The notes beneath the pieces were generated by a model that did no database searches, was not told where the DNA came from, and saw only the letters and a program-made list of their open reading frames with translations. Shown here in pieces: positions 11,578-45,272 of a DNA stretch of 64,000 bases. A program made the translations under genes and the position numbers. This DNA comes from Zygnema circumcarinatum SAG 698-1b (taxonomy: Eukaryota > Plantae > Zygnematophyceae), in assembly GCA_037447605.1 (NCBI GenBank), contig CM074818.1, positions 1,562,617-1,626,616 of the forward strand. The letters run 5' to 3'. The stretch's first letter is position 1. The number at the start of each line of letters is the position of its first letter.

Positions 11578-14500
11578 CTACACAGCGGCGGCTTTCTGAG
11601 CACTTCGCAAGGCGTCCATTGCCTTCGCCGGTTGGTTTCCATGGAGCAAACTGGTGCCGTCAAATCGACGATAAAGGCCTCGGAACGCATCGTCTTGACA
11701 TGCAGACCGGAGTAGCTGGAGATCGATCTGCGAACGGGAAAACAAAGACAGATACTCTCACATAAGGGCGCTCACTTCCTCAATACTTTCTCTCTCCCTC
11801 TCTCCTCTTTCCTTTTCTCCGTTCTCTTCACTCCTCTACTCTCTCCCGTCTCACTCTTTCCCACCTCGTTCTCTCCCCTTACTCTTCCCCTCTCTTCCCT
11901 CCCCATCTTCACTCCCCCACTCCTCTCTCTCTCTCCTCTTTCTCGAGCATGTGGTTTAATCCGATACAACGCGTAGAGGGGAGAGAGAGAGAGAGAGGAT
12001 GAGGGGACAAAGAGAGGGGACGGGAAAGGGGAGAGAAAGTGACGGGCAAGAGAGAGAGTGCAGTGCATGCACTGCACTGCACTGCATTGCTCTACTATCC
12101 CCCACTCTGCTCTGCTCTCCTACGCCCTCCCCCCCTTCCCTTCTCCCCTCCTCTTCTCTACCTCCTCTCCCTCTCTTTTTGCCCTCTCTCTCTCTCTGGC
12201 GCTTTTTTTCTCTCTCTCTCTCTCTCTCCCTCCCTTCTCTTCCTCTTTTCAGCTTTGAGAAAGTCGTCCGCTTTCGTATAGTAGTCTACAGATACTCTCA
12301 AACAACAGGGATAGTTAGGAACCTCGGGAACCGATGGTGCCCGAAGGCGAAGATCACATCGGTGCACGTGAAGCGCTGTCATGGCTCTCCCGCTCACCTG
12401 AACTCCAATGTCCCCATGGATTGTATTGAACTTGCTTAATTGTTCAACCAAGCACCAATCATACCTACCAGGCTACATAAGCCATACACATTGTTAAGTT
12501 GAAACGATTCTTCTGATATGCATAATTTGGTGTATGTAGACCCTATCGCACTCATCCATATCACCTGCTTACTTCAAAAACTGCGACCCCATGTTCAACC
12601 CATTCCGCTTGCAGAGTTTGCTACTGTCCGAATTCCGTAAATACAGCAGTACCATACATCTTACATTTGGCATTTCAAGAGTGGAGTTCTTTAAACTGAC
12701 CGAGGAGAGCATCTGCAGAAAAGCCTCTGGGCGGAGGGTGCCCTCCATGCAGTCCTGCACGCCCGTGAAGCGCAGCGCCACCACGTCCTCCTCCGGACGG
12801 GGGCGGCTCCCCGCCACGGCTGCCGGCCAGGGGCCGCGGTGGACAGAGGCTTCTAGAAGCCTCTTTCGCAAATCCACCTTCTGCTAAGCGTTATGTGTGT
12901 GTGAGGGAGGGAGAGGGAGGGAGGGAGNNNNNNNNNNGAGGGAGGGAGGGAGAGGGGGAGAGGGGGAGGGAGGGAGGGAGGGAGGGAGGGAGGGACGGAC
13001 GGACGAAGGGAGAGAGGGATACCACTCGTTCTACAGGCGGCAAAACAATTAGGGCAGGCGAGAATTTGGAGCGGGGGTTGTCGAGCAAACGAATAGGAAG
13101 CATTATGAACAATGGAAATGATGAGACAGAATGAAAGTGTGTAAGAAACAGAGAGGTACGCGCTACATGGGTTGACGTGCCTTTTCCTTCTTTTTGTTGT
13201 GGCTGCTCATGAGGGCCTCAAACGCGGTAAGATGGAGAACATCTTGGACCCAGTTCTCAGCCTCTTCAGCCGAGACCCTCTCGCCCTCCACTCTCACTGC
13301 CACAAGATACTCCGCTGCATAAAGCAGCTGCACCAACGTACAGACAAGGAATAGCGAAGCCTATCTGTCAAGGTGACATCTTGCAGTTTCGACTCCAGCT
13401 TCACGAATAGAGACCCAAATTTCTACAGCATCTACAGCAGGCAGAACGTGACGTTTCAGATGATAGGACGGAGGAGGAGAGGGAATGAGGGAGGGGGAGG
13501 AGGGGGGGGGGGGCGACGTCTAGCGGGAGATGGAAGGGAAGAGGCGTAGAGGGAAAGTTTGCATTCCAAACCTTAGAAAGTGATTCAGTCATTCGACCAT
13601 CGGCTCGTCGAAGGCGAACGTTCTCCAGCTTCTCAATGGAGATTTCAGAAGGAAGCTGCGGAGTTCAACACCGCCAAACATGGTTGTGAGCGACAACAAG
13701 TAGTAGATGATAATAGCACGCCCTTCACAGGTAGCAGAGATGACATGTAGAGCCCCTCTAAATGTTTCTTCTGCGTTAGAGCGTTTGTAAAGTTTAAGGT
13801 AGTTTAGGGCATGGAAAGGTCAAAAAAGTGCAACACCTGCTCAGCCAGGCGGCTGCGAAAGGAGGGCAATGAGATGGGCAGAGTGAGGTCGATGTCCACC
13901 AACTGCATTCATTTCAGGAGAAACGCAGAGAAAGCATATGATTCGATAAAAAATGAGAGGTACGTTAACTGCAAGTGAATACCCTCTCGAGTTTTAAACA
14001 GCCGGAAAACAATACATACAAATGGAACGTGGACATAGCTTTCTCGCTTAAAGCCCACTCCAATTGAGGCCCTTATTCATCTTGTTTAGACTTTTTTGTT
14101 TAAAAAAGTCAATTGCTACCTCACACGAGCTGGTGTAGCCGAGAGGTAGAGGTTGAGCGCTTGAAATTCGCGGTAGCGAGTGGAAGCTGTAGAGCGGTAT
14201 TCCCACAGATGCCACAAGTACAGGGCGATCCAAATCAAGGCATTTTTGGTGGCTCAAAGGGACTAAGAAAAAGAAGAAGAAGAAGACGAAGACGAATCAA
14301 GAATCTCAGGAGTATCGTTTCATTCACTCTCCCCCCACCCCCCCTCCCTCCTCTCCTCTTGTTTCTATCTTTTCCCCATTCCCCCTTTTGTTTGGTCCGG
14401 CTTCCTACCCCTGATCGTAGCTCACAGGGAGAGCTGCCCGTCGAAGCGCTCTGTCTATAAGCCTCATCATGTCCAGGTGGCCAATCAGAGCCATGCTCCC

Positions 14501-17500
14501 CTCCTTGCTGTACTGAACCCTCACACGCTGAAATGTCCGCCCTCCCATGTCTTCTGATACCCTCGTCACCAGACTGACCGAGCATGTATAGATAAATATA
14601 TGTAAGGTATATATATCGTATAGAATCCTACAATCCAAGGACTTTCCTGTAATGTAAGGGCCTGCCCTGAACAAAGGCCAGAACTATGCGTGCACGCATG
14701 CCCGCTTCTTAAACATAATGAAGAGAAAAGGAAAATGAATTTGAAAAGGGACAAATACCGACTTTGGAAGGCAGCTGCACTATGCATTTGTGCTAAACAG
14801 AGAGAAAAAAGGGAGTTGTTTACCTGTGCCCGATAGGAGTTTGGCTTAAAGTCGCCCTCAAACTTGGGCACTTCCGGGATATCCGCTACCACTGACTCCA
14901 TGCATGCCCCACAGTTCTGGTTTGAGAGATGAGTGTGCAGTTTCCTTGTGCACACACAGGAATTACGCATACCAAGACAATTCGTAAATCAGCGGCTTAA
15001 TAAGTCGTAGAGTATATACATAAACAAGATAGCACAGTTGGGACTTCCTTTCCGTACTCTTAACTGAAATGATTTGCTCCAGATATTTTTCCCAATGAGT
15101 ACATCACCTCCAAGACAAAACTCGACAGTCAATCGACTTCTCATCGCATCGACCTCTCCCTTCCCCTCTCTCTCTCTCTCTCTCTCCCTCTCCCCCACCT
15201 TCTATATAACATACCATTGTCTCCAAAGTCGTCCCCACAGACTCCGCACTTGGAGCACACTCCACTGTGGGAGCAGTCAGAAACTGTGGCGGCTTCCAGG
15301 GCCCGCTGAAGGTCAGCCTTTAGCCACCACTTGGCCACCCCGGTCTGCAGATGCACACACACGGATATAGTTGAAAGGTTCCCAAGTAGGGAGTAGTAGA
15401 TTACGGCACTCTAAAAAGATTAAAGTCTGTGCCAGTTCATGCTTTTGCAGGCCCACCACACCGCATAACAATGCACAACAGTCAACCATCGAAAATTGAT
15501 AACCGATCAGGCGTTTATATTATCAAAATGCATGTAAATCTTCCGAGCTTTTTGTTAAATGACCCCCCAATAATTTACACGGCTCTGCAAGTCACGCTTA
15601 TATGAGGATTATCAGGTTCCAAGCCTGACCACCACCCCCAACCTCCTTTATGTTACTCCTTCATGTACAATTATGTGGTGGATTTTTTTTGGGGGGTAGC
15701 GGGAAGGATGACAGAAGAGAGAGGGAGAGCGGAGAGAGTGAGAGAGTATACGTCAATGATATCCCATGGAAGAGGGGAATCGAGGCGCGGATCCGCCAAG
15801 TCTCCGCGATCAAGCCGGCCTTTCCCTCCCTCTCCTTGCCCGCGATACCTCCCATCTCCAAGTGCCTCCATCACATTCCACTCGCCATCTTCTATCTGAC
15901 ATGACATGCCGCACCTCATCAGTTTCATGCATGCAACATGTGGGACAAATAACTAGGAAGCAAGGATGAGGTTGCGTGTGATATAGAATTTTAGGGTTCT
16001 TAGGGTTTCTAGGGTTTTGGGAGAGGAGGGGAGAGGAGAGGAGAGGGGAGAGTGTGGGTTTCGAAGCAGACTTGGCGATACTTCCATGCAAGGCCCGCCT
16101 CCTCCATGGCCTGCGACCAGCTCTGGAAGCAGCTCTCCGTACTTCCCCACCTGCAGGCCCGGCAGAGGGAGGGATTAAGGAGACATGCGTTCCATGTGGG
16201 ATTGTTATGAAATGAGTTCAATTCCATCAGTTACCATATATGTTCCTTGCCCTGCGTGTTTGGTTCATGAAAAAACAAAATCTCAAGTTTGACAGCCAAA
16301 GCATGACATAGTGCATGGGACCCAAATCCCGAAGACCCCATACCATGCATCATTGGTTGCTCCCAGCTCCCACGCCCTCCTCATTACTTTGCCGAGACTG
16401 CGATCCCCTCGACCTATGAAATCCTCCATGGCTGAAAGCTGCAGCCACAAAAGCTAAAAGGATAAGCCAATTCAAGAAGAAAGAGGGCTGACATTGTCAG
16501 CCAAGATCTTCACAGCTCCCTACCCTTTCTCTCTCGGTATCCTTTTCGGTAGAAATGTATGACCCACCTTAGTGTCAGTGAAGCTGTACTTGACTTGCCA
16601 CATGCGATCGAACTCCTTCTTTAGAAGCTTCTGTTTTCTTGTGAATTCGGATGTGGACACGCTGTGCCTGCAAGAAGCCTCTCAGTGGAAGAAATTTAGA
16701 TGTATTTTCGGGGTTTGTTTCTTTATAATTTTCGCTGCCAATTTATTTTTAGGATACTTTCTTGAAGTCCTCCTCTTCTCATGAAGAAGGAGCAGTTGGT
16801 ACTGACGAAGAAGCTGCATGTTGGCAGGCCCAGGGAAGCTTCAATATGGGGAAGAATATTGAAGGAGAGAAAGGAGAGAGGAGAGATGTGAAAAGGAAAG
16901 TGAAGAGAGGGCAGTGGAGACGAAATGAAAAAGAAGCTGAGAAACAGGTAGAGGGAGAAGAGACGAGGGGAGAGTAACACAGACACGAAAGGCGAGGAGG
17001 AGGGAGGCGAGGGGAGGAAAAGGGAAGGGAGAGACAGAGAACGGGCGAAGAGAGGGGAAAGGGGGACAGGATGGAGGGCAAGGAGAGGAGGAGGAGGGGG
17101 CGAATGGGAGAACGGAAAATTTATCTCCTGAAGGTAATCATCTGAGCAGAGGACAAGCCCTTCGAGTCCATTAAACTCGGTAGGGATTCAAGTCATTCAA
17201 CAGAAAAAAAAAAAAAAAAAAAAGACATCTCAAAAAAAATCTCAGTTTCATCTCGGAGTTCGAAGAGCGCCCATGTGCACGTGAGGCAGAAGCTGGTTGT
17301 CATTTCAAGCTTGAGAGGCTGAGGAAATCGCAGGAAGGAGGGGAGGAGAAGGCAGGGAGGGAGAGGAAGGAGATGGGAAAGAGGACGAAGCACAGGCGAA
17401 AGGAGAGAGGAGGCCGGAGAGACGAGGCGGGTGGAGGAAAGGAGAAAGGAGGGAGGAAGGTAAGAATGAAACGAAGGACAGGAGAATAAACGAGAGAAGG

Positions 17501-20500
17501 AGAGAAGAAGGGGAGACGATGGCCTACCACTGAAAGGGCGTGTGCGGCTTTGGAGTGAAGTTGGAGATGGTGAGCCGCACGGCTAAGTGCTGCTTCCCTC
17601 TGCGGCAGTGACCTTGAAGCCACTGCACAGGGAGAGAGAGAGAGAGAGGGAGAGGGAGAGAGAGAGAGAGAGGGGGAGAGAGAGAGAGAGAAAGTGAGAG
17701 GAGCTTCCGGCACCATTGCGTGAGCCGACTTCTTTATGGTTGGCATCACTTTAGGCAAATTGGCATTGCTTCTCTGCTATAAAAAATTCAGTGGAGCAAA
17801 AACTAATAATAGATTGCAAGTTTGGTATTATTCGGCCATGGAAAAAAATTGCGAAAATGTCTGAGCTATTTGCAAGAAGCGGTTGTAAGGGATTTGTAGC
17901 ATACCTTTATCGTCTTCGCTATGCCCAAGACATCTTCATCGGTTTCGCCGGGCAGGCCAATCATGAAGTAGAGTTTGACCTGAGATTGTGCAGTTATAAA
18001 GGATTTAGAAACTATCCATGCAATCTGTGTTCCGTCACTTAACAGTCCACCATCTTGCACTCGTAGTAGATAAAAAAAATTACAAAAAAATCTAAAATGA
18101 ATGACAACATGGTGCAGGTATCATTTGTCAGCCCACGCATCATCCATACGTGATGTACCCATAGCATGTATGATTCGAAAAAGGACTAGAACGAGCACTA
18201 CAAGCACTCCTGCGTACTGAGCAGACCCATGTTCTAGGAGTAGGAGATGCATAACAATGCCCCACGACTAAGGAAAGGCCTGCTGGCAGCTTCGCCTCAA
18301 TTCTTTGAAGGGGTCGATAGAACAGCTAATTTCTAGAAGTAGAGCTTTAGAGTGTTGTGGGTTTTGCGCATTCAAAGGCTTCAGAAGGGAAAACGAAGGG
18401 GCAGCACCTGCCGCCATCCTTTGTCCCACGCTTTCTTCACACCGCGCAAGAGCTCCTCGTCTGTTAAGCCCTGCCAGTGAACCCTGCACAAGTCAGCCCC
18501 TCTCTCTCTTCTCTACCTCTACCTCTACCTCTCCCCTCCTCCCATCTTTCATCTGTTTCTCCTTCTCTTTCTTTCGCCTCAAATTCTTCCAGTGGAGGCC
18601 AGGAATCTCTTCACCTTATTGATGATGTCACGCATGCGTTGAGTCCCGGCTTCCGGAGCGAAGGTGAGGGAGCCCTGCATGGAGATCAAATAATCACACG
18701 AAATAGAATGGCCGTATTGCCTTAAAAAAAACGATTGAATAGGACAAGGTGAGCATTTTGCATGAGGCTGCCTGCAGCGTATGGGAGAGAGTGGGAAGGA
18801 GAAAGGGGAAGGAACGGCGGTAGGGAGAAAGAGAGGAAGAGCGAACTGAAGGACGAGAGCAGAGGGAGCCAGAGGAGAGTGGTGTGGGAGAGAGACGAGA
18901 GAACGATGGAGGGAGGGACGGACGGACTGTTGGAGAGGAGTCGACAAAGGGGCGCAGAGAGAGAGAGGGAGGAGAATGAGGAGACAGCGAGAGAGAAAGA
19001 GCTAGGAGATAGAGAGATGGTGGCCGAGAGAGAGAATAGAGACAGAGAGAGAGCTGGTGGCAGAAAGGCAGGGAACACAACTCAGGGAAAAGGGTGGGAT
19101 GAGATATGAGAGAGAGAATGGGAATGAGGGAGGAATGGAAGGAAGGCGGTGAGGTAAGGGGAGAGAAAGAAAAATAGAGAGGCAACGAGAGACAGAGAGG
19201 TAGAGAGGGAGGGAGGGAGAGAGAGGGAGGGGGAGGAAGATCAGAAATATAGACCTGACGGGTACCCCCGATGATGTTTGCAATGTCATCATTGAATCGG
19301 TCAACTCGCTGACTAGGCAACGATAAAGAAATTGGCACGTCTTTCAACCGGTTTTTGATCTGCGCATTACATTCAGCAAAACATTCTCAGTTACATCTAT
19401 ACGTACCACACAATCATATTATTTGTCATATTAGTATTAATGCTATTATTATAATATAAGTGCTTACCCCGATGCCGACTGCCGGCAAAGCGAGGTAGTC
19501 AGAGCAGCTGAGAGAAAGCAGAGAGAATTCCGTATAGCCCGTCTTCCTGCTCCAGGACCAAAGCATGTCAATGTTTGAAGGGGGTGGAATATTGAAATTC
19601 GAGGGGAAAAAAACGAGAATTAAGGGACAGGAACGAAAACTCTACAGGTGAACCGCTCTAAGCAAACAGCAAACAGCAAACACTGCTGAGGCCGAAATTT
19701 CATTGGCTTAGGCAGCAGTTAACATGGAACCAGTCTCAGTTGAACTTCTTCAATGTTAATATCTTATTGCACGCATGAGAGTCATTTTTTACAGCACTTA
19801 AAGAAAGAAGTAAAACATAAGACAATTTTAATAAGGAGGATAGTCAGTTAAGAAGGTGCAATTTCTTCCATTGCAGGCATACCGCATTCCTTCCTGAACC
19901 GCTTCAATGACCCGTTCCGGCTCCACATCTCGTGCAGGTCGTGTGAGCATGCCGGCTGAATCCCACTCCCCTTCTCCCTTATTCATCCCTAGCAGGCTCT
20001 AAAGCAACAGGAAATGCATATCTGAACCTTTGAACTCACCACCGTCTTCCCCTCTCACTCTCTCTCCCTCACTCCCTCTCTCCCGCTTACTCTCTTTGTG
20101 CTGTTCAAGAGTGAGGAGGAGCAGAACTCACGCTGGCAGAATCGACACCCACGCGTGCACCCTCTGCGAATTTCAACGGTGAGGCGATCATGCACTGTAG
20201 CCCCCTTCCATCCCCACTTCCGTCAAATGTATAGAAAACCCACAAAAGAATGAATATAATTACGTACGCACAGCAATCATATGCAGCAAGAAACAAACCC
20301 AAGCAAGAACATAAACTCTAAGCCGTGAATCGGGGCTTTCCAGGTTCACATGCGAGCAGGCCCACCTGTCTCCACATAAGGCACGAGGCCTATCTGCTGC
20401 ATAGGATCTGGCTGCAAGCCGCACCATCAAGCTGCAAAACTTAGTTAATAATCTATGGAGGCCCCACGATCCTTTCAGCTTATACAAGGCACGATTCGGA

Positions 20501-23500
20501 TATGACAAACAGACTCAGGTAATGCTTGTGGCAGTCCGTACACAGCTTAGGGCAAACAGTTCAGCTCTACCGGCCACTGCAGGAGTTTATTTTTGAGTTT
20601 TTTGAAAAGGAAACAGATCAAGAACGCAGCTCGCTTTGTACCATGGAGACACGCCGCAAAACGCGTTCCGGCACTCCTTCATAGAGAGGAAAAACCGCCC
20701 CTCCCCAACTGCATTTTCCATACACCAAACCCTCACTTGAGCTGATCCATGAGCCCCTGCTTGTAGCCGGGAACCAATAAACAACTCTGCCGTCTGTGTT
20801 CTCATCGTGCATACGAAAAGTGAAAGCCCTTTCCTCCTCCCCTCCTCTCTTCTCCCACTCCTCTTCCCTGCAGCAGCTCTCACCCTGGCAGATGCTCGTA
20901 TAGTTGGGGCACATAAACCCCTTTGACTGACTGGGCCAGTCGCAGCAGGGTGGCGTGACGTGACAGCCCATCTGCAACACAGCTTTCAAGGCAGCGCCCG
21001 ATCTCCGGTAGACAGTCCTGCCACCCATGTCCTCTTCAGTAAGCATAAATTTCAGAGCTTGAAGTCTTTTTCGAGAGAACGAGGTTGATGAGGAGCCCAA
21101 CTCTCCGATGTTGAGAGATGGCATTGTGGTGCTTTCGTGGAATTTCGAAAAATCGTTTCGTTTATATTATTTTAGATAAATCTCAGAAGCCTTCCCGGAC
21201 AAGACCCTGCTTGGGGTCAGCTACATATGATCGAGGAGGACAAGCAGAGCGGCTTACCTCCCCATCTCCGATTGCGAAATAGTCGAAAAAGTCCGAGAAT
21301 GGCTCTGGATTGGAAGTTGCTGTAGGCCCACCTGTAGGCGCCCATGCTCAAACTGCAGTTCAGCACAACCTTCAATCACCTAAATTGCGCACACGCATCA
21401 TACACGCCTCTTTCTCATACTTTTCCCTCTCTCTTTCACAGGCATCGAAATAGAAAGGATTCATATAAAGCATCTCAAACGGCTAATTGTGCAACGCAGC
21501 TCGTTCAAATAATACCAGTTCTTCTCCTTTGGGCTCTGTTGTCTAACCAAAAGAAACCATCCTGCTCACTCAAACGTTTGGCATGTTTTCATTGTTGAGG
21601 GCTTACCAGCTGAGACGATGGGAGCTTACCAGCAAAAATTAAGGGCCAGCTGCCCTTCTCTACATCCCAGGGCCGGTCATTGGCCTCCTGTCTCTCCGCC
21701 CAGGAGATGGGAATTCTCGCCTGCTTCAGCATCTCCAGTACGTTGGTACCCCCCAGCTCATAGCTGCACAGCCCATATAGAATTCTTGACGGGTGCATGC
21801 TAGACCAATGCCACTTGGCTGAAGTGAGCTTAGCTTAAGGTAACTTCACAAAAGGAAAGTTTTGCCAAAAGCCTGCAATATTGGAATCAGAGGGAGAGTG
21901 GTCAAGCCCCTCGATTAAAGGGCTGGTGACCCAATTTCTTTCCTCAAAGAGAAAAAATAGGTGAAGTAAGGTGACCTGAGACTGAAGCCAACAGTGTGAA
22001 AGTCTCGGAGAGGACGCCGCGACTCCAATGCAAAAAGGGGCTGCGATTGTGAGCAGGAGCAGGGAGTGAGGGCCCAATAGACTGCCTCAGTTGAGGCTTT
22101 TTAGTTTCTTGCATGTACTTAAGATTCAAACCCTGAAGCCTGAACCCTGATTTAAACCCTGAAGTCCTAAAGATATTGAGTGGTTACCAGATCATAGCGT
22201 TGTAGACAGGCAGTCATGTCTGCCTCAACGAAGTAGCACCGATCGCAGAGAAGATTGAGCGTTTCATTCAGCACCTGCGTTCAGGAATCTGAGAGATCAA
22301 TATTTGAAACCAATATTCACTGAGGTGGCTTTCTCTAGCGAAACAGCGGCATCATCCTACTGATAATAATGCATAAAGGATAACTGACTTTTTTCATACA
22401 AGAATAAACACGGGGCTAATGTCAAGTATGAAGTTGCTGTATGCAAGAATCTTGAGATGTCGTGCCCCGGTTTTCGTTTTTGTTTAGAATGACTTACTAA
22501 AGTATGTTTTAAGAGGGAAAAGAGACACGATAAAGAAACCATAAAAGTAATCAAAGCTCCGCTTTCATAGGCCAACGGCTTGTACAGATTTGAACGAGAG
22601 GGTCTTACCGTGTAGAGTAGAATGTGGCCTAAATTGCTCGCTCCGACCTGTATGAATGGAGCAGCCCAACACACGAAAAATAAGTGAAACAGAAGACGGA
22701 AGCAAATAAACAATTTTAAATACATGAATAGATAAATTAAAAACCAAGTAAATAGACAAACAGAGAAACTGGTTAATTATTTAAATATAAAGAAATATCA
22801 AAAACGAAGAGAAACCATTCCTCCAATTCAAAATTTCAGATGCAAATGTAATCCATAATGATGACGGAATAGGGACTCACACAACATCTAAAGCAAGTTG
22901 AAGTGCATTGACTCAAGAACATCCTGCTTTTACATATTACATAAAATTCACCAAAAAATATTTTTTTTCTAGCAAGAGGATAAGAGGAGGGAGACAACAA
23001 ACTTCATAAATTTCTGGATACGCCAAACAGAAGCGCACGGCAGCAGAGTTCCAGGGCTTGTGGATCGATCCAAATTCGTTGCCCAAATAGCGAGCAGGTT
23101 TCTGCAGCCTGGCACCAAGCAAAACGGAAGAAAACCCTAAAATCTTGAAGCAATAGCAAATACTCGCAGATTTGAAGTCAGAACTGGCTGCGTTGAAGTG
23201 ACATTGGAAGGATTATGCAGCTCCAAGGACTAGGCGAGGACGGGGAGAAAACTTACTTGACCCATTCATGCATGGGGATGCCATCTATGGCTGCCTCTGT
23301 TGTCTGTGATGACTTTTTGAATGACGTTTGAACAGTGAGAGGAGCGGCAGGAGCAGTTTCTGCAGCTTGGCAAGCAGGAGAGAGAGAAGGAGAGGACTTC
23401 GGCCGGCGACTGGGAGGTCGGAGAGTGAGGAGCGAGAGGGAGGGGAACAAGGAGCAGCCACGGCGCATTGCAGGGCGAGCTGAGGGGGAGCAGGAACATG

Positions 23501-23633
23501 AAGGAGACATAGATGGAAACGCTTCACTTCGCGATACATTAGAGCTACGACTTGTATAGCATGGACTGGAGAATGACGCCATGGCGGTCATGGCAACAGG
23601 GGGAGCAGGGCGCGACAAGACGAAGGCCGCCAT
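11578..23633 (-). CDS. Plastid-targeted TIGR03960-family (B12-binding-type) radical SAM protein fused to a C-terminal DUF2344/TIGR03936-type domain; many exons
   Basis: Ser/Ala/Pro/Arg-rich exon 1 (transit-peptide-like). Then QKPARYLGNEFGS..FCLAYPEIYEVGASNLGHILLY; SYELGGTNVLEML; LVPYVETVHDRLTVEIRRGCTRGCRFCQPGMLTRPARDV (CxxxCxxC, exon 20194-20132); FSLLSLSCSDY; SLPSQRVDRF; LTFAPEAGTQRMRDIINK; KLYFMIGLPGETDEDV; SNFTPKPHTPFQW; DCSHSGVCSKCGVC; then RVQYSKEGSMALIGHLDMMRLIDRALRRAALPVSY and PRISSAQPLPLGYTSSCE (DUF2344-like). The last exon (11727-11578) is in frame but less certain. Confidence 0.9.
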
Positions 23634-27132: not shown

Positions 27133-30100
27133 ATGGCAGGAAACTTTGAAAACCACCGCCTGTTCATGAGACCTCCTCCCTCAGCTCCTGCTCTGCAGCC
27201 GCAGCATCAAAGCGCTCCCTTCCCTCACTTCCCCATCTCTGCAAGCTCGCCGCTGCCTCCTCACCTCCAGCAGCTTCAGGGCCCGTATCCAGGGTCGCAG
27301 CAGCAGTCCATGGCGATGCCTCAATACCCCATGCATCTTCACAGCATGGATATGGGGTCTCTGGGGCCCTCTTCTTTAGGACCTCCTTTGGGAGGAAGCC
27401 TCCCTAATGATCCGGGAGGGAGCGCAGCAGCTCCCTCCTTTCATGGCTCCCAGGGTGATCCTCTAACTGGCGCTCGGCTCCTGGCCATGCTTGGAGCTCA
27501 TAACGTGATGGAAAAGGCCCCGACAAGCCTTCCGGGGCCACCTCCTTCGGCTCCTCCTGCTCCTCCTTCTGCTCCAGAGCAGCAGCAAGGAGTGGATGCT
27601 TCTTCAAGTTCTGCCACGGTCATGCCTGAAATAGGTGTAACGCAAAACGTACCTTCAAGTAGCTTCAACAGCAGCAGCATGGCGCCCCCCCCCTCAGCTC
27701 CTGCTACTCCAAGCGCCCCGCATCTATCCTCAGTTCGTGATATCTCTAGCGAGATGGATAATATGGAGAGCCTGAGAAGAAAGCCTGCTTCAGAAAGAGA
27801 TGGAAAAGGGCGAGTCTTAGCAGGGGAGCACATCGTGTATGACATTGATGCGCGTCTTCCAGGGGAGGAGCAGCCACAGTTGGAAGTGACACCAATTACT
27901 GTATACTCTTCAGAGGTAGAGCTGTCCCCCGGTCACAGAGTGGCTGTGAACCATTGTTACATTTGTTACCTCCTTCGAGGCGGAGCCGTTCGGATCCTCA
28001 GCGTCAAGTCCGGGGCCCGTGCCGTACTTCGAGGCCATTCAGAGGTCGGTTTGCAGCCTAATGACAAATATCGCTAGATGCATGTGAATGCTGCCAGTTT
28101 AACAATTGGCTCTTTCTACTTTTATCTTGTCCAAAATTTGAGAGTCAGGTATATCGTTCTTGAGCCTGTTTTTTTTTTTTTTTTTTTGTTAGTGTTGGGA
28201 TTTTGATCGGGTGAGGTTGAGGTGTGGGGCTGCAGAGAGTGATGGACATGGCCTTTTTTGGAGACGATGTGCAACTTTTTGCGAGGTATAATCATTCCAC
28301 GCTCGTGCTGATCCTTAGGCTACCTCACTTTCTGTGAAGCTCATCTAATTTGATCCTTTCCTCTAACAACATAGTGGAAGGCGGTTCACAGTGTCTGTGT
28401 ACAGGGGCGTCTACTAGTACGGCGAATTAGTGAGGGAGTTGGGGAAGATGGCAAGCCTCATATTCAAGACACTGTATTGCTAGCCTTCCAGCTTCAGGGT
28501 CCGTGGGGATCTGAAATTGCTCCACAGCTGTGTTGGCATCCATCATCAGAGGTACAACTCAAGTCTACAACTCACTTCTTACTGTCTGGCTACAGTAGGC
28601 TTGGAAGATTCCTCGTTGCGTGGTTTGAACCCAGAGTTTTGGCATGTCATGTAAGGTTCAAAACAGGATGATATTGACTACTAACAGGATGATATTGACT
28701 GTTTTTTTTTGTTTTTAAATGAAGGACATCCTTTTCGTTGCTTGCCACCAATACCTGCTGTACATATCCATCGGGAGAGTAGGATCTCAATGCCCCAATA
28801 TGACTACGACTTCACTTGTCCCTTGCTCTGTTGAAGCCCCTCCATCCGGTGTGCATGTTTGGCGCGGTCATGAGGGACCCATCGTGTCGTTGGCTCGGCC
28901 CCTATGGCCGAACTTTCTACTTGCAACTCCCTCAAAGGATGGCACTGTAAGTTGTATTAACCACGAAACATTATGCAGAAGCAACATTGTGCAGGGATTG
29001 ACTTGCAACGCGAAGGGAAGCCATCGCCAACATTAACATTAACATCTTAATTTTGTATGTCACGTACGTTACATAAGTAAAGAAGGCATATCCAAAGCAG
29101 GTGATTGAGATGTATTAGTGGCAAATTGCTCGATGATGCTGGAAAGGAAAGGTTTTGAAACGCTTTTTTGAAGGATTTTTTTCATAGGGTAACCAGTTGT
29201 TCATTCTTTTTAACAAAGTTTTGCTGATCGGGAGTCAATACTGTGTTGAGAAATTGTTCGATTGCACCTAAAATCTTCGTATTAGTTTGCTTCCTTCGTA
29301 GTTTTGGGACATATAATTTAGGATATGCTAACAGGATGCTGTCTATTGGCTGTCATGGGCTGCCCCACCTGTTGGACTATATTATAAGATGGGGAATGTT
29401 TTCTATGACTAGTTGTTTTTTGAAGTGGTCGCTGTACTCCTCTGATCCCAAAACTGTCTATGTGTGTCTCTATTGCAGGTGCGCATTTGGGGAGATGGAC
29501 CGCAGGCCCCTTGCCTCTCAATGTTGGTGCCTCATAATGGCCAGCCAGTGTACAGTGCCATCTTTATGCAGGGTCAACCAGGAAACTTACAACAGAAAAT
29601 TCTTGTTACTGGGGTAAGCTGACTGCCTCAAGTCTATTCGAGCATCCTGCTGTTTCTTTCATGATTAGAAGAGCTCCTGTCTTATGCACTTGAATGTGTA
29701 GCCTGAAGTGCAAGGCTGAAAATGAGACACGTACAAGCCTCACCTGTCGTGATGGTAGCGCTTACTTCAGACTATGATATGTGAGCAGGGTCCTATGAAT
29801 CATGAGATCAAATTGTGGGCTCCATCGAATCAAGAAGTTCCACTTTCCTCTCCCAACGAAGGATGGCAATGCATTCATACACTGGACTTCCAAGCTTCTG
29901 CTTCTGGGGGAAAAAGCGCTTTTTCCAATCAGATCCATGTTGTAGAAGACGCAGGACTCATTTTGCTTGCCAATGCGAATAAGTTGGCTGTCTATGCGGT
30001 GCATGTCAGTTTTGGTCCCACTTCAAGGGCAGCTCGCATGGACTATTTGGCAGAGTTTTCTGTCACCATGCCTATATATAGCTTTTCAGCAGCCTTGGAT

Positions 30101-33100
30101 TTGCGAAACGGCTTCCAAGAAAAAGTTCTGCTTAGCTGTGTGCAGTCACAGGGCATTCAACAATACAGCCTTGAGATTAAGAGCTGCCTACCTCCTGAGG
30201 AAGAAAAGGCTGCTTCTATACAGACCCCTAGCAGTGAGCAGGCCAAGACTGAGCGTGTACAAAGTAACTCTCTGTTGGAGTTGGTTCGTAATGCAGCATC
30301 CGGTCCGTTTGGCAGCCCTGTAGATCAAAGGCCACCAAGCATTGTTGGCAGCATAGCAGGAGCAGAGTCTGCAAGCTCTCTTCCTGCAACAGATGTTACG
30401 ACAGTTACATCAGAACCTGCTGTAATGGAAGGCTCAAAACTTAGTGCTTCTTCCACAGAAGGGCCAAAGCACCCATCACTTGAGCCTGTGGATGCAGCCC
30501 CAACTTTAGGAGTGCTGACTGCTGTGCCCCTGAAACCGAATACTGAAGCAGGGGGGGCTGCTGAAACTCTTCAATCTGAAACTATGAGTGACGGACCTGA
30601 AAGCTCACAGGCAGGCTTGCCTGATATGACACCTGGTAGCAAGGGGGAAGAGATGGGTGGAGTTGGCAGACCACGGGAGGGGCAAGGGTCTGCCAAGATG
30701 CAGCTGGTAACACCTATGCAGCTTATGTCACTGGTGGCTCAGGCAGAAGGGAAGTACTCTGCATCTTTGGAAAGCAAGGGAGCTGTGCAAGACAGTGAAG
30801 TTCGGGGAGGTCCGAGAGAAGGTGCTAACGGTAGTCCAGCTGTTTCGCAAGAGAGTGCTTCAGTTCCGCTTCCAGAAGCTGATGCAAAAGATACAATCAA
30901 CACTAGTGAGGCTCCGCAAGAAATTCCGTCCACCGTAACTGTCGATTCCGGCGAGCTCAGAGAAGGAGAAGATGCTGTAAGCAGACAAATGCTGCCACGC
31001 TTTGAAGCGTCCTCGAGTGTGGGAGAGTCTCCTGCACAGCTTCTTGAAGGGCCTACGCTTCCTGAAGGAGCAGAGGGACAAAGTGTTCCTCCGTCTGCTA
31101 GTAGTGCAGGTGTTGGTCCTTCTGCGAAAGGACGGAAGAATAAGAACAAGAGTCCAGTAGTTGCAGGTGCCCCCATTCCCAGCCCACAATCGAATGAAGC
31201 AGCAGTACAAGGATCACCTGCAAGTGGTGATGTGGAAATGGACACTGCTCAATCTGTCAGTTTGGAAGCCTCTAGCAGGGTCCCTTCAGGAGCAGAGAGC
31301 TCCTTGGCCGCACCTTTGGCATCTGTGCAGGAGAGTATTAACCAGGTGAGCTTGCTCAGAAGAAACTAACGACCTAGTTGTCTCGGACGCATGTGGTGTA
31401 GTCATGGATTGGTTTGAGCAACTTATTCTAAGGTCATAAGCATTCAGAGGCCCTTGGCTCTTACATTAGGATGCATGCATTTGATCTTATACGTGCTCAG
31501 TGAACCCATGTGAGACATTGCTAAACATTGCAGAAGATGCCGTCTGTGACTTTCCTCCCAAAAGCAAAGTAAGTGCTGATCAACTGATCAAGGAAATTTA
31601 ATCTATGCAGCTGATGAACATGCAACGGGAGCTCAGCAACAAGGTGGCGATGCTGGTAGCTGTCCCTGTAGCAAAGGAGGGGAAGAGAATAGAGGCTGCC
31701 CTTGGGACCCGGCTCGAAAAGGCCCTGAAAGCACATGCAGATGCACAGTGGGCTCGGCTACAGGAAGATGCAGCTCGCCGGGAAAAGGCAGAGAGGGAGA
31801 GGATGCAGCAGACAGCTTCTGCATTAGCGCGAGAAATACAGCCATTGCTCGAGAAGTCTCTGAAGAAAGAAATCGCAGTAGTGGCTCCATCAATTGCCCG
31901 GCTTGTGCTGCCTCCTTTAGAGACTGCCATTGGATCCGCCACTAGTGAATTGCAGGTGAGAAGGAATACACACTCGGAAATAGGAATTGATCTGCAGGCT
32001 GAAAGTCGCTTTTGTACCTCTGTTTTATGGGGATTCTTATTTTGTTCCCTGCTTGTACTATATACCTGGTGAACCCTGCACAGTCCGTTTGAGGTAAGGT
32101 CGCTGTACATGGAGCAAGGGAAATTTTGGCCTGCAAACTCATTGCAGATTCTTCGATTGTGACTGCAGAAGTTGGGACCGCAGATGGAGAGTACCATTGC
32201 CAATCATTTGGAGACTGTAATCAGTCGACAGGTTGCAGCAGAGTTTCAGACTAGTGTTCGAGCATCGATGCAGGCAAGGACAAATCATCCTGCTCCTGTA
32301 TACTATAGGCTCGTCCAGGTTTCCCTCCCTTTCGACATCCTGCAACTCCTGAAATGTTGACCTCCTTCTTAATTCCCCCCCCCAATCCCCTAATATCCTC
32401 TTGTTTTGTCATGCATTTGGCTGAGACTGTTCTGCCTCTATGCCTCGTTTTCGGTATACAGGAAGCTCTCCGATCGTGTTTCCAAGCTGTGGTAGTCCCG
32501 TCCTTTGAGAGCGCATGCAGAAGCATGTTTGAGCAAATGGACGCTGCTTTACAGAGGGGCCTTTCAGAGCATAGCGCAGCCGCCCAACAGCAGTTGGCGG
32601 CCTCCCACACAGCCTTGGCGGGGTCGTTGCAGGTACAAACAAGATCATACACACACAACCTTAGACTAGTTCCACAGCAGACCGCAGTTTTGCCTACCAT
32701 AGTAGGAAGCAGTAGTAGAAAAAACCAAAAACCAAACCATAGTAAAACCATAGTAGTTTTTGGAACCATAGTCCGATGTCATGTGTGGGAAAACTCAGCT
32801 AGTGGATGCGGTGGTACAGGATTCCATGGCGGCTGCTTCAGCTCTCACCAGCACGCTTCGAGAGGAGGTGATGGAGGGGCAGCGGACACTGATCTCTTTG
32901 GCAGAGTCAGCAGCGGCAGGCAACAAAGTTGCTTTTGGTGTCGGAAAGTCCAATGGAGGCCTTCAAGAAAGGGTGAGTAGGAGGAGGAGAGTGGCTGCTA
33001 CCTTCAGGTTTGAATAAACAGTTTGATTCTCGATGTAGGAACTCTGCTATGCATAGTTGTAGTGCAGATTGAATCAGGCGAGGGACTGTGAAATTCTAAC

Positions 33101-33866: not shown

Positions 33867-34686
33867 GGCAGCTTTGAGGGCGTCCTTGCTTTCTTAGGGT
33901 GGCGGTTGAGCTCTCCCTGTTAGCACTAGCAGAGGTGTTTAGGTAATTGCTTTCTTTTGATGGAAGCAGTGGATTCTTTCTTGTAATGCGATTGTTTTGG
34001 TCTCCCTCTCTATTTCTCCCTCTCCCTCTCTCTCTCTTTCTCAGAATCTCTGCCAGAAAGAATACCCCTCCCCCCCCCTCCCTCATTCCCTCCCACTCTC
34101 CCTCCCCTACTCCCACACCCTCCCTCTCTCCGCCCCCCTCTTCCTCCTCTCCCTTCGTTTCTCCCTCCCTCCCTCGCCGTCTACCCCGTCCCTCCCTGCC
34201 TCCCCCCTTTCCCAACCCTTCTCCATCCCTCCCTGCCTCCTCCCACTCCCTCCCCCTCTTCCTCCCCCACTCCCTCCTCTCCCTCAGACTCTCCCCCCCT
34301 CCTCCCTCGCTGTTTCCCCCCCGCCCTCCCNNNNNNNNNNCCCCAACTTGTTTTCCATGGCCTCATCATCGCTGAGATCAATGCAAGTTTCCCCTTCATT
34401 TTCCATACTATCCATCACGGGGTGTCAGACTTCACAAAAACTTTCGAACACAGTTTTGGAAGTCTCCGCCCCCCGAAGATCGCGATATCACCGAAGTACT
34501 CGTTCTGGTCTCAAACTTTCGTACAGTTTTCAAGTCTGACACCCCCTATTGTAACCAATAGACAACGCACGCGGAGCTTGATCCGCCTCTTACGGAAGAA
34601 ATAATCGGAATGCATTAGGGTATAAATGTGGAATTTGTAGAGTGAATGGCTCCACAACACAATAGCCGCACTTACACATATCACGT

Positions 34687-40830: not shown

Positions 40831-40930
40831 NNNNNNNNNNNNNNNNNNNNNNNNNNNNNNNNNNNNNNNNNNNNNNNNNNNNNNNNNNNNNNNNNNNNNN
40901 NNNNNNNNNNNNNNNNNNNNNNNNNNNNNN
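40831..40930. other. Scaffold gap (100 N); the NDC1 3' end and TIM22 5' end are missing
   Basis: Run of N; the coding sequences on both sides are incomplete. Confidence 0.95.
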
Positions 40931-43277: not shown

Positions 43278-45272
43278 TTACAAGGTGCGGCCCACAGTCC
43301 AGACTCGGATCTTTCCGTCGGTGTATCCTGAGTACAGAGTGCTTCCGTCTGCGCTCCAGTTCAGGCTTGTGCAGTAGGGAGTCTGAAATCCAAACCCCGA
43401 AAGAGTTAACTTCAAGAAGGACAAAAGGACGAACTAGGAAAGAACCGCATTTGAAAGAAGAAGAGAGAAAAAACCCATTGAACTAAGCAATTATAGAAGG
43501 AGGTACAGGGTGGGGCATGCATTGACCTTAGGTACTGCGGGAAATAGACATGCCTAAGCATGACCAGGGTCAGGGAGAAATGGGGGGGGGTGGGGGGGAG
43601 AGGGGGAGTGGGGTTGAGAGACTGAAAAAGAGGGAGAGAAGAGAGAGATAGAGAGAGGGAGAGAAGGGAGAGAGAGGGATAACGAGTGAGGGGGAGAGAG
43701 CCCACATATGGGCGTAAAGACGTGCTTCAAAACTTAAGGTTTACGATGGGCAAGGGAAATCTAACGGGAACGGCGATTGCATTAACCCTAATTCAGTAAG
43801 CACATAACCCTAAACAGCCTACGATAAGTGTCCCGTGCCAATTTTTTCTAAAGCAGGAAAAATTTCACAAGCCGCTCAAAATCTTCAGGAAGATGTCCCT
43901 CGGATTCAAAACATTTGAGCACATTCACTCAGTCAACAATTGGTAAGTCCTATTTCCGCTTTTCTTAAAAATATGTGAAATGATCAGCACTCCGTCACTC
44001 TTGCAATACTGCAGCTTAAGGGCAGAATATAGAGGAGGCAGTAGGCTTTATGAGAGTCGGGATTGAAACAGGGGAAAGAGAGAGCGGCAGAAGAGGGAGA
44101 AAGTGAGGCGACTACGACAAGGACGTGAAGCCCAGTGAATGAGAGAGAGAGAATGAGAGACACACACAGCGCCAGGGACAGCGAGAGGACGGCGGACTCA
44201 CAGAGAGTGGAAACGAGAGAGAGAGTGGAGAGAGTCACAGAGAGTCACAGAGAGGGTGGAAGGGAGAGAAAGAGGAGAGGAGAGCGAGACAGAGAAAGGA
44301 GCGAGAGCGTGACAGAGAGTCACCTTGAAAGAAAGTGAGAGAAAGAGAGAAAGAAGGAAGAAGGAAGAGGAAGATAGAGAGAGAAGGAGAGAGAGGGAGA
44401 GAGAGAAAGAGAGCTACCTGAGCCTTGGCAGTTCGTTCCGGGAAGTCCGGCACGAGCGTGTCCACGGGGCTCTTGCTCTCCAGGTCCCAAATTTTGATGC
44501 AGGACTGCGTGGCTGCGCAGAGCCAGTAGCGGTTGGGGCTGAAGCAGAGCGCGTGGATGATGTCGCCCGCGTCCAGCGAGTACAGGCGCTTGCCCTCCGC
44601 AAACTCCCACAGCATCGCCACGCCGTCCTTGCCTCCACTCGCGCACAGAGAGCCGTCGGGAGAGACAGTCACAGTGTTAATGTAGCCGGTATGTCCGACC
44701 AGGTTCGTGCGGAGCTTGCAGTTGGTCAAGTTCCAGACCTTCACTACCTTGTCCCACCCTCCGGAAACTATGATAGGGTGCGTGTTAACGGGGGAGAAGC
44801 GGACGCAGCTGACCCACCCTGTGTGGGCCTCCTGCTCCTGAATGGTGTACTTGCACTCGCCCAGAGTGTTCCAGAGCTTGATGCTGCGGTCCCTGGACCC
44901 AGAAACGATCTGCCTGTTGTCAACGGAGAAGGCTACGCTGAGCACATCCTTAGAGTGACCCACAAAGCGGCGAGTGGTGCTTCCGGAATTCAAGTCCCAG
45001 AGGCGGAGAGTGCCATCCCAGGAGCCCGAGAGAGCGAACTGTCCGTCAGATGAGATGACCACGTCCTGCACGAAGCCGCCATGGCCGGTGAGGCGGCGGC
45101 GGGCATAGCCATAGTTTCCCTGGTCTCCTTCCTTGGTCAGATTCCACACTATGACTGACTTGTCGCGGGAGGAGGAGAGGATCATGTCCGAGTTGTCGAG
45201 GGGGCAGGCTATGGAGGTCACCCAGTCGCTGTGACCCTTCAGGGTCCCTCGGAGGGTCAGCTGCTCCGCCAT
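43278..45272 (-). CDS. RACK1: RACK1 (receptor for activated C kinase 1, WD40 ribosomal protein); exons 45272-44418 and 43382-43278
   Basis: [22 protein letters not shown]...[34 protein letters not shown]...[25 protein letters not shown]|[34 protein letters not shown]. Confidence 0.98.

Follow-up and report, generated by a model that had tools for sequence, protein, structure and literature searches.

A radical SAM-DUF2344 protein encoded by an intact nuclear gene of cyanobacterial plastid ancestry in Zygnema circumcarinatum: a candidate RNA-directed partner of RNase E/G

The window analyzed here, a stretch of 64,000 nucleotides from contig CM074818.1 of the streptophyte alga Zygnema circumcarinatum SAG 698-1b (positions 1,562,617 to 1,626,616), contains an intact, intron-rich nuclear gene, and phylogenetic analysis of its predicted protein traces the gene back to the cyanobacterium that gave rise to the plastid. 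We propose, at about an even chance for the proposal as a whole, that the product is imported into the plastid and is a radical SAM enzyme that acts on RNA in concert with RNase E/G, its most likely target being plastid RNA and not the plastid wall.

Results

The gene lies on the minus strand and, in a homolog-guided model of 32 exons, runs from the ATG at 23633 to the TAG at 11580-11578 (Table 1), reproducing exactly the limits given in an earlier note that had read the locus, from its letters, as an intact, spliced nuclear gene. The coding sequence of 3249 nt encodes 1082 amino acids with no internal stops; the start codon is the first in-frame ATG following an upstream stop, exon 1 ends at a GTAAGT donor, and 30 of the 31 introns are GT-AG, the remaining one being GC-AG, with a donor (AAG/GCACGT) that had the top homology score among all in-frame donors of exon 29. 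Both cysteine motifs picked out earlier, CTRGCRFC and CSHSGVCSKCGVC, were located on this strand.

An assembly gap (N, 12928-12937) falls within a (GAGG/GGGA)n repeat of intron 29 (13180-12884). Since the exons flanking it align to consecutive residues (...973/974...) of the closest match of the window protein, EukProt transcript P0207 (72% identity), the gap is intronic, so that the reading frame across it is irrelevant and the coding sequence is complete; what it affects is the length of intron 29, and the acceptor of exon 30 is either 12883 or 12880, a difference of one amino acid.

That the locus might instead be no working plant gene, but contaminating bacterial DNA, a gene recently acquired by horizontal transfer or a pseudogene in decay, is extremely improbable. 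The bacterial type of the family, and nothing further, speaks for it, and against it stand 31 spliceosomal introns with canonical sites, a eukaryotic gene neighborhood (RACK1 and a LOB-domain exon), the place of the protein within a eukaryote-only clade matching green-lineage relationships, and a 3249-nt frame that is open throughout and retains 137 of 137 conserved family residues (44 invariant and 93 near-invariant across 66 homologs); on these grounds, contamination and pseudogene were both rejected. An Rfam scan of the window returned no RNA families.

Table 1. Exon model of the window gene, with the motifs and profile matches assigned to each part
Feature	Position	Strand	Content
Exon 1	23257..23633	-	aa 1-125; start codon; extension rich in Ser, Ala, Pro and Arg (putative plastid transit peptide)
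Exon 2	23003..23108	-	aa 126-161; conserved core begins (KPARYLGNE...); TIGR03960 6-43, E 1e-8; 86% identity to P0207
Exon 3	22609..22647	-	Start of N-terminal Radical_SAM_N2 domain; junction solver, GT-AG
Exon 4	22188..22274	-	Homolog-guided junction model
Exon 5	21976..22040	-	TIGR03960 profile 81-105
Exon 6	21630..21763	-	PF19864 57-92; TIGR03960 105-133
Exon 7	21258..21331	-	GGPTATSNPEP...GDGE motif, Rossmann-like N-domain; PF19864 92-117, 29.7 bits; 96% identity to P0207
Exon 8	20884..21017	-	TIGR03960 167-202
Exon 9	20642..20708	-	Homolog-guided junction model
Exon 10	20366..20411	-	Homolog-guided junction model
Exon 11	20132..20194	-	CTRGCRFC cluster motif, aa 389-396; TIGR03960 249-272; PF04055; 100% identity to P0207
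CTRGCRFC motif	20136..20159	-	Within exon 11
Exon 12	19883..19955	-	Homolog-guided junction model
Exon 13	19468..19546	-	TIGR03960 294-316
Exon 14	19255..19359	-	TIGR03960 320-355
Exon 15	18615..18674	-	LTFAPEAGTQR motif; TIGR03960 356-376
Exon 16	18408..18470	-	TIGR03960 373-398
Exon 17	17905..17979	-	KLYFMIGLPGETD motif; radical SAM core end; TIGR03960 385-422; PF04055 142-165
Exon 18	17528..17622	-	TIGR03960 433-459
Exon 19	16568..16667	-	Homolog-guided junction model
Exon 20	16344..16438	-	TIGR03960 492-529
Exon 21	16072..16150	-	Homolog-guided junction model
Exon 22	15752..15895	-	Gly/Arg-rich insert; low-pLDDT segment in the ortholog's model
Exon 23	15215..15344	-	Four-cysteine motif, aa 744-756, near-invariant in family; TIGR03960 561-597
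CSHSGVCSKCGVC motif	15237..15275	-	Within exon 23
Exon 24	14824..14891	-	Inter-domain linker
Exon 25	14409..14527	-	DUF2344/TIGR03936 begins (GHLD...RRAALP); PF10105 1-40, 55.8 bits (cut-off 23.8); TIGR03936 1-40
Exon 26	14120..14186	-	DUF2344; PF10105 41-81; TIGR03936 41-74
Exon 27	13837..13902	-	DUF2344; small, missed by tblastn, read from sequence; P0207 residues 876-897; GT-AG
Exon 28	13572..13655	-	DUF2344; homolog-guided junction model
Exon 29	13181..13327	-	DUF2344; ends at GC donor AAG/GCACGT
Intron 29	12884..13180	-	GC-AG; contains N gap 12928-12937 in (GGGA)n microsatellite
Exon 30	12701..12883	-	DUF2344; acceptor 12883 or 12880, adjacent AG sites
Exon 31	12323..12397	-	DUF2344 end
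Exon 32	11578..11727	-	Conserved C-terminal tail and TAG 11580-11578; 61% identity to P0207 C-terminus

The encoded protein consists, in order, of a 128-residue N-terminal extension, a Rossmann-like N-domain (PF19864), a radical SAM core, a CX5CX2CX2C motif and DUF2344/TIGR03936. Cyanobacterial homologs lack the extension, and the first 60 residues of the window protein are 25% Ser, 15% Ala, 13% Pro and 10% Arg, with one acidic and six basic residues. This Ser/Ala/Pro/Arg-rich, low-acidic make-up agrees with the transit-peptide-like character that had been attributed to exon 1, and by composition alone the extension is a putative plastid transit peptide.

The window protein was scanned exon by exon, the joined model being used for homolog alignment and trees, while whole-protein HMM scores and the fold were taken from the ortholog P0207 standing in for it. 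The exon pieces are colinear with TIGR03960 (positions 6-597 of 605; 14 pieces match this profile alone, in profile order) and then with TIGR03936 (1-74), with further matches to PF19864, PF04055 and PF10105, and this order bears out the fusion of TIGR03960 and DUF2344 claimed in the earlier note. For TIGR03960 (cut-off 462.3 bits), P0207 scores 528 and the cyanobacterial P0214 574; for TIGR03936 (NCBIfam cut-off 71.9 bits), the exons give 54.7 and 18 and P0207 140.8. Exon 25 alone exceeds the PF10105 cut-off, placing DUF2344/TIGR03936 in the protein, and exon 26 adds 21.7 bits, while PF04055 is weak exon-wise (15 and 13 bits) and reaches 68.8 in P0207 against a cut-off of 29.5. The CX3CX2C signature of the radical SAM superfamily is present as CTRGCRFC. 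This triad and the post-core CX5CX2CX2C are the only conserved cysteines of the family, and DUF2344 has invariant residues of its own (K, H-x-D and E).

Domain order, CX3CX2C, the four-cysteine motif and conserved residues are common to the window protein and bacterial TIGR03960/TIGR03936 proteins. Cyanobacterial TIGR03960-DUF2344 proteins are 57-59% identical to it, and the fused architecture, described earlier as typical of cyanobacteria, is shared by all full-length cyanobacterial loci that were sampled; in contrast to these, the window gene is nuclear, is split into 32 exons, and encodes the 128-residue extension and a C-terminal tail of ~50 residues. The family also extends to many other bacterial phyla, green algae and Euglena. 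The "B12-binding" annotation named in the earlier note is indeed the label in NCBIfam, and, in line with the description of the family as uncharacterized, a literature search yielded no paper on it except a remark in a Pfam-clan study, which lists "PseudoU_synth_1+DUF2344" among the Pfam splits of the pseudouridine synthase domain (PMC7955657).

Homologs were found in Chlamydomonas, Volvox, Chlorella, Ulva, Closterium, Chlorokybus, Mesostigma and Euglena, and in the trees those of green algae and Euglena make up a single clade nested within Cyanobacteria, where the window protein falls among the streptophyte algae. FastTree (97 rows) placed the eukaryote clade (support 100) within Cyanobacteriota (100), with Melainabacteria as sister, and IQ-TREE (LG+F+G4, 44 rows) recovered the same nodes at 100/100, grouping the window protein with P0207 (99.3/100) next to Closterium (100/100). 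An endosymbiont origin, as had been claimed, is thus upheld by the nesting of the eukaryote clade, and the 31 introns and the cyanobacterial tree position together point to endosymbiotic descent.

Members of the family are already in databases as hypothetical proteins, for example CHLRE_09g390801v5 of Chlamydomonas reinhardtii. The green-algal orthologs and Euglena EG_transcript_2742, at 58-72% identity to the window protein, share with it the combination of PF19864, PF04055 and PF10105 and the N-terminal extension; none of them carries an annotation beyond "hypothetical" or "Radical SAM core domain-containing," and the window protein is another species' ortholog of them. Database searches returned no land-plant homolog, mosses, liverworts and lycophytes included, from a database that yields land-plant RACK1; the gene was apparently kept through the streptophyte algae and lost in land plants.

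Bacterial synteny was scanned at 80 loci, of which 69 were informative, and one further locus (L083) was fetched separately. In 47 of the 69, drawn from at least seven named phyla, the next gene downstream in the same orientation encodes RNase E/G, with a median gap of about 280 nt; the cyanobacterial order is gene, rne, rnhB, and 11 of the 30 informative cyanobacterial loci lack the RNase E/G adjacency. In the examined parts of the window itself, no RNase E/G gene was seen. Both bacterial neighbors named in the earlier note, rodA/mrdA and RNase E/G, exist in bacterial loci, and we treat gene order as no more than circumstantial evidence.

The earlier note had left two functional options, RNA modification and plastid peptidoglycan or envelope biology, and of these the first gained from the RNase E/G adjacency and the fold described below, while the second lost ground. 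A role in the biology of the plastid's peptidoglycan, envelope or division could appeal to mreC-PBP2-rodA directly upstream in L062, L067, L076 and L083, yet besides L083 this neighborhood turns up in just 3 of the 80 scanned loci, against 47 with RNase E/G, and in many bacteria rng itself adjoins the mre operon, a possible explanation of the adjacency. Moreover, Chlamydomonas, Volvox, Chlorella, Ulva and Euglena, which are not known to have a plastid wall, all carry the gene, and the searches returned no homolog from the mosses, liverworts and lycophytes whose RACK1 proteins the same database yields, although these plants keep plastid peptidoglycan genes; nor did Foldseek on the P0207 model reveal any wall-enzyme likeness in the fold. 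We consider this role very improbable.

An AlphaFold model of P0207:125-1123 (pLDDT 90.2, pTM 0.88) was searched against the PDB with Foldseek. The top match is MgmA (9ccb; E 3e-12, TM 0.67), with TsrM, CysS, TokK and OxsB among the further top matches. Class B radical SAM enzymes thereby supply the best folds for the N-domain and core (MgmA, TsrM [6wte], CysS and TokK; E 3e-12 to 1e-7), as well as the best secondary HMM matches (TIGR04013, TIGR04014, TIGR04190 and BzaD), and the GG...PEP...GDGE pattern of the N-domain is a likeness of the same kind. Class B methylases, however, lack a pseudouridine-synthase-like domain, and PF02310 found no match in P0207, P0214 or P0184 even at E<=1, their N-domain being PF19864; the class B fold of the N-domain and core is thus found on the P0207 model, and the PF02310 domain is not. 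AprD4, which is not known to use cobalamin, matches the model about as well as the class B enzymes, and because AprD4 and MiaB (TM 0.59) score like cobalamin enzymes, fold alone does not decide class B membership. We assign a small chance to the reading that the protein truly depends on cobalamin and methylates plastid RNA, or changes it in some other way, which would imply an unrecognized use of B12 in green-algal plastids.

The family also resembles MiaB and RimO (fold E 4e-9, sequence E about 1e-5) in its plan of a Rossmann-like N-domain, a radical SAM core and a C-terminal domain for substrate binding, with a putative second metal site. Its N-domain has no conserved cysteines, so that the UPF0004-type cluster is absent, and its C-terminal domain is the pseudouridine-synthase-like DUF2344 instead of TRAM; MiaB-type membership was rejected on the missing N-domain cysteines.

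In the P0207 model, DUF2344 adopts the pseudouridine-synthase fold, matching TruA (1dj0/1vs3; E 3e-7, TM 0.56-0.58, about 290 columns) as well as PUS3 and Pus1, the three together ranging from E 3e-7 to 1e-5 and from TM 0.5 to 0.58, whereas sequence similarity to TruA, Pus1 and PUS3 is negligible. A low-confidence hhalign alignment with E. coli TruA (probability 7%) sets the catalytic Asp (GRTD) opposite PLPLG, and DUF2344 is probably not a working pseudouridine synthase. From the fold alone, we infer that it may bind RNA.

The same results bear on an alternative in which the enzyme would modify a protein, RNase E/G and a ribosomal protein being candidates, with DUF2344 as a protein- or RNP-docking module. 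MgmA, the best structural and sequence neighbor among solved structures, is a protein glutamine C-methylase acting on methyl-coenzyme M reductase, RimO, which modifies ribosomal protein S12, also matches, DUF2344 seems to lack the catalytic Asp of pseudouridine synthases, and the conserved neighbor RNase E/G could itself be the substrate; on the other side, the pseudouridine-synthase fold is elsewhere known as a catalytic fold that binds RNA, and the match to the tRNA enzyme MiaB is roughly as good as those to the protein-modifying enzymes. On balance, a protein substrate seems unlikely, if worth keeping in view.

Discussion

Two results lead us to favor an RNA-directed role: RNase E/G lies downstream in 47 of the 69 informative loci, and the ortholog's model shows a pseudouridine-synthase fold for DUF2344. 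In the mechanism we propose, the protein would be imported into the plastid, where its pseudouridine-synthase-like domain would dock an RNA (rRNA, tRNA or a substrate of RNase E/G). Cleaving SAM to a 5'-deoxyadenosyl radical, the radical SAM core would bring about C-H functionalization of a nucleotide, methylation being the most probable chemistry, as the catalytic half finds its nearest matches, by sequence as well as by fold, among the class B methylases with a cobalamin domain. An auxiliary metal center (Fe-S or Zn) may sit at the four-cysteine motif, and the enzyme would share a pathway with RNase E/G, in RNA processing or ribosome maturation.

With this proposal, a widespread and strongly conserved family gains a concrete, testable hypothesis, that of an RNA-directed radical SAM enzyme acting with RNase E/G, for which the Chlamydomonas ortholog and model cyanobacteria offer tractable organisms. 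For plant evolution, the gene is an endosymbiont gene retained in streptophyte algae and apparently lost in land plants. Should cobalamin use prove true, the plastid enzyme would join the short list of algal B12-dependent enzymes, and the apparent land-plant absence would be part of a general loss of B12-dependent enzymes. If the cobalamin-dependent enzyme also acts on plastid RNA, its relatives in bacteria would stand for a new RNA modification linked with RNase E/G.

A scan of genome contigs with the DUF2344 exon alone gave no confirmed relative, but an alignment query succeeded. A single-exon query of the representative library, with matches at <=60% identity only, led to full-length homologs such as P0055.

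Gene structure and conservation

The window is eukaryotic DNA of about 48% GC, with abundant CT/GA microsatellites and five N gaps. The gene model was guided by alignment of the window to the closest full-length homolog, P0207 (a 1123-aa EukProt transcript), with the in-frame GT/GC...AG pairs that best fit this homolog chosen as junctions, while one 66-nt exon and four C-terminal junctions were read directly from the sequence. It comprises 32 exons and a coding sequence of 3249 nt, encoding 1082 residues with no internal stop, and its introns are GT-AG in 30 cases and GC-AG in one. Start and stop coincide with the gene limits proposed in the earlier note, and the two motifs quoted there, CTRGCRFC and CSHSGVCSKCGVC, were both located on the minus strand.

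Features of the window
Feature	Position	Strand	Remark
Radical SAM gene	11578-23633	-	ATG at 23633, TAG at 11580-11578
CTRGCRFC motif	20136-20159	-	
CSHSGVCSKCGVC motif	15237-15275	-	second, four-cysteine motif
Exon 22	15752-15895	-	Gly/Arg-rich insert, aa ~673-720
Intron 29	13180-12884	-	
Assembly gap	12928-12937		within (GAGG/GGGA)n array
CT/GA-rich introns	11760-12260, 12900-13020, 17300-17700, 18700-19250	-	
RACK1, large first coding exon	44418-45272	-	WD40, small ribosomal subunit protein; by protein identity
LOB-type open frame	48336-49232	-	first ~40 residues match C-terminal part of LOB domain (PF03195, 28.6 bits)
Long open frames	29774-31369, 27133-28077	+	531 and 314 aa, without Pfam match
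Further N gaps	865-874, 34331-34340, 40831-40930, 46645-46654		

One assembly gap falls within intron 29. The donor of the preceding exon (AAG/GCACGT) has the top homology score among all in-frame donors against four homologs, and P0207 continues without a break from residue 973 to residue 974 across the intron; hence no coding sequence is hidden in the gap, and since it is intronic, the reading frame across it is irrelevant. The acceptor lies at 12883 or 12880, adjacent sites that differ by one residue, and the gap also leaves the intron length uncertain. The gap was caused by one of the intronic microsatellites, which give rise to long but spurious Ser/Leu/Pro-rich reading frames.

When minus-strand open stretches were scanned separately, the NCBIfam matches were to TIGR03960 alone, in strict profile order over positions 6 to 597 of 605, after which TIGR03936 positions 1-74 were matched. 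Pfam returned PF19864 (Radical_SAM_N2), PF04055 and PF10105 (DUF2344), the last scoring 55.8 bits on the first DUF2344 exon by itself against a cut-off of 23.8. The TIGR03960 and DUF2344 assignments of the earlier note hold exon by exon, colinear with the profiles.

Aligned with 66 homologs of algal, cyanobacterial and other bacterial origin, the model lacks none of the 44 invariant or 93 near-invariant residues. Identity is 72% to P0207, 64% to Closterium, 58% to Chlamydomonas, 57-59% to cyanobacteria and 35% to Vampirovibrio. The four cysteines of the second motif are near-invariant across the family, which suggests an auxiliary metal site. A MiaB-type cluster was excluded, as the N-domain has no conserved cysteine in the homolog alignment. 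Exon 22 encodes a Gly/Arg-rich insert (RYRGQGEGGKGRLDRG...) that further homologs from algae and cyanobacteria have as well, and the P0207 model predicts disorder there; RGG-like stretches frequently contact RNA.

Distribution and origin

A representative-library search with a single exon recovered full-length homologs, with which two further searches were made. The same three-domain architecture occurs in green algae (Chlamydomonas CHLRE_09g390801v5, Volvox, Chlorella, Micractinium, Ulva, Botryococcus, Tetraselmis, Acetabularia, Pedinophyceae and marine prasinophyte-like sequences), in the streptophyte algae Closterium, Chlorokybus and Mesostigma, in Euglena, and in hundreds of cyanobacteria at 55-61% identity. 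Database entries label these homologs hypothetical, 'Radical SAM core domain-containing' or 'TIGR03960 family B12-binding radical SAM protein', and we found no literature on the green-algal orthologs. The gene is a new member of a known, uncharacterised family, and public databases already list its orthologs from green algae as unnamed proteins.

No land-plant homolog appeared among the best 120 matches of either full-length-homolog search, where a land-plant ortholog would be expected to outrank cyanobacterial matches; as a control, a search of the same database with the neighbouring RACK1 does yield proteins from Riccia, Diphasiastrum, Selaginella, conifers and angiosperms.

An alignment-based genome scan covered 37 cyanobacterial loci and 43 of other phyla. 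Every full-length cyanobacterial locus carries the fusion, as do loci of Melainabacteria, Thermodesulfobacteriota, Myxococcota, Ignavibacteriota and others; Bacillota, Chloroflexota and Actinomycetota carry both parts as separate adjoining genes. It is thus typical of cyanobacteria, as the earlier note states, though not exclusive to them.

Trees built with FastTree (97 rows, 838 columns) and IQ-TREE (LG+F+G4; 44 rows, 847 columns) agree, and in both the eukaryotic sequences fall into one clade (support 100) that branches from inside Cyanobacteriota (100), with Melainabacteria as sister. The nearest neighbour of the window protein is P0207 (99); Closterium and P0270, a further homolog, join next (100), all within a streptophyte group. 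This placement bears out the proposed endosymbiotic origin. Plastid targeting, also proposed, is probable: the 128-aa N-terminal extension has transit-peptide composition and no cyanobacterial counterpart, so import into the plastid is likely.

Two locus labels disagree with their placement. L025 (CALRUP020000010.1, labelled as an Acidovorax caeni MAG) carries a picocyanobacterium-type copy followed by rne-rnhB and falls within the Synechococcus/Cyanobium clade, and its contig is probably cyanobacterial DNA placed in the wrong bin; L020 has the label Gloeobacteraceae but groups with Nostoc.

Fold, gene order and predicted function

P0207 served as the fold proxy (confident AlphaFold model of residues 125-1123, pLDDT 90.2, pTM 0.88). 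Its N-domain and core have cobalamin enzymes as their nearest folds, with MgmA (9ccb) the best match (E 3e-12, TM 0.67), followed by TsrM, CysS, TokK and OxsB, all cobalamin-dependent; MiaB and AprD4 reach similar fold scores. Secondary HMM matches were exclusively to cobalamin-domain radical SAM families, and PDB profile matches were, in order, MgmA, then RimO and MiaB. Pfam does not call the N-domain as B12-binding. Land plants have lost B12-dependent enzymes, and their apparent loss of this gene forms a parallel that is suggestive only.

The C-terminal domain resembles the pseudouridine synthases TruA, PUS3 and Pus1 (E 3e-7, TM 0.56-0.58), and DUF2344 is listed as part of the pseudouridine synthase domain in a Pfam-clan paper (PMC7955657). 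The TruA-type catalytic Asp is seemingly not conserved in DUF2344, in a weak alignment, and we therefore interpret this domain as one that probably docks RNA, not as a working pseudouridine synthase.

In 47 of the 69 informative loci, which represent at least seven named phyla, the next gene downstream encodes RNase E/G and is on the same strand, and the cyanobacterial order is gene, RNase E/G, then RNase HII. A role in plastid peptidoglycan, one of the alternatives in the earlier note, finds no such backing, because mreC-PBP2-rodA lies upstream in only three of the 80 scanned loci and in L083, a bacterial locus fetched separately, the gene is found across the chlorophytes and in Euglena, and neither search had a bryophyte or lycophyte homolog among its best 120 matches. 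On the combined evidence of fold, sequence and gene order, the favoured reading is a radical SAM enzyme that acts on RNA and is tied to the RNA processing that depends on RNase E/G. The value of this reading is that it sharpens a testable hypothesis about an orphan enzyme of very wide distribution, and does not lie in the locus per se.

Neighbouring genes in the window

The RACK1 protein is closest to that of Mesotaenium endlicherianum (92% identity), followed by Riccia (86%) and Closterium (82-83%), and its open frame continues into an intron past ...TAKAQ. Judging by its domain match, the LOB-type frame is probably a single exon from a gene for an LBD transcription factor, a family of streptophyte type. 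RACK1 and this frame point to a streptophyte alga, probably of zygnematophyte grade, as the source of the DNA. The two long plus-strand frames could be lineage-specific genes or repeat-derived.
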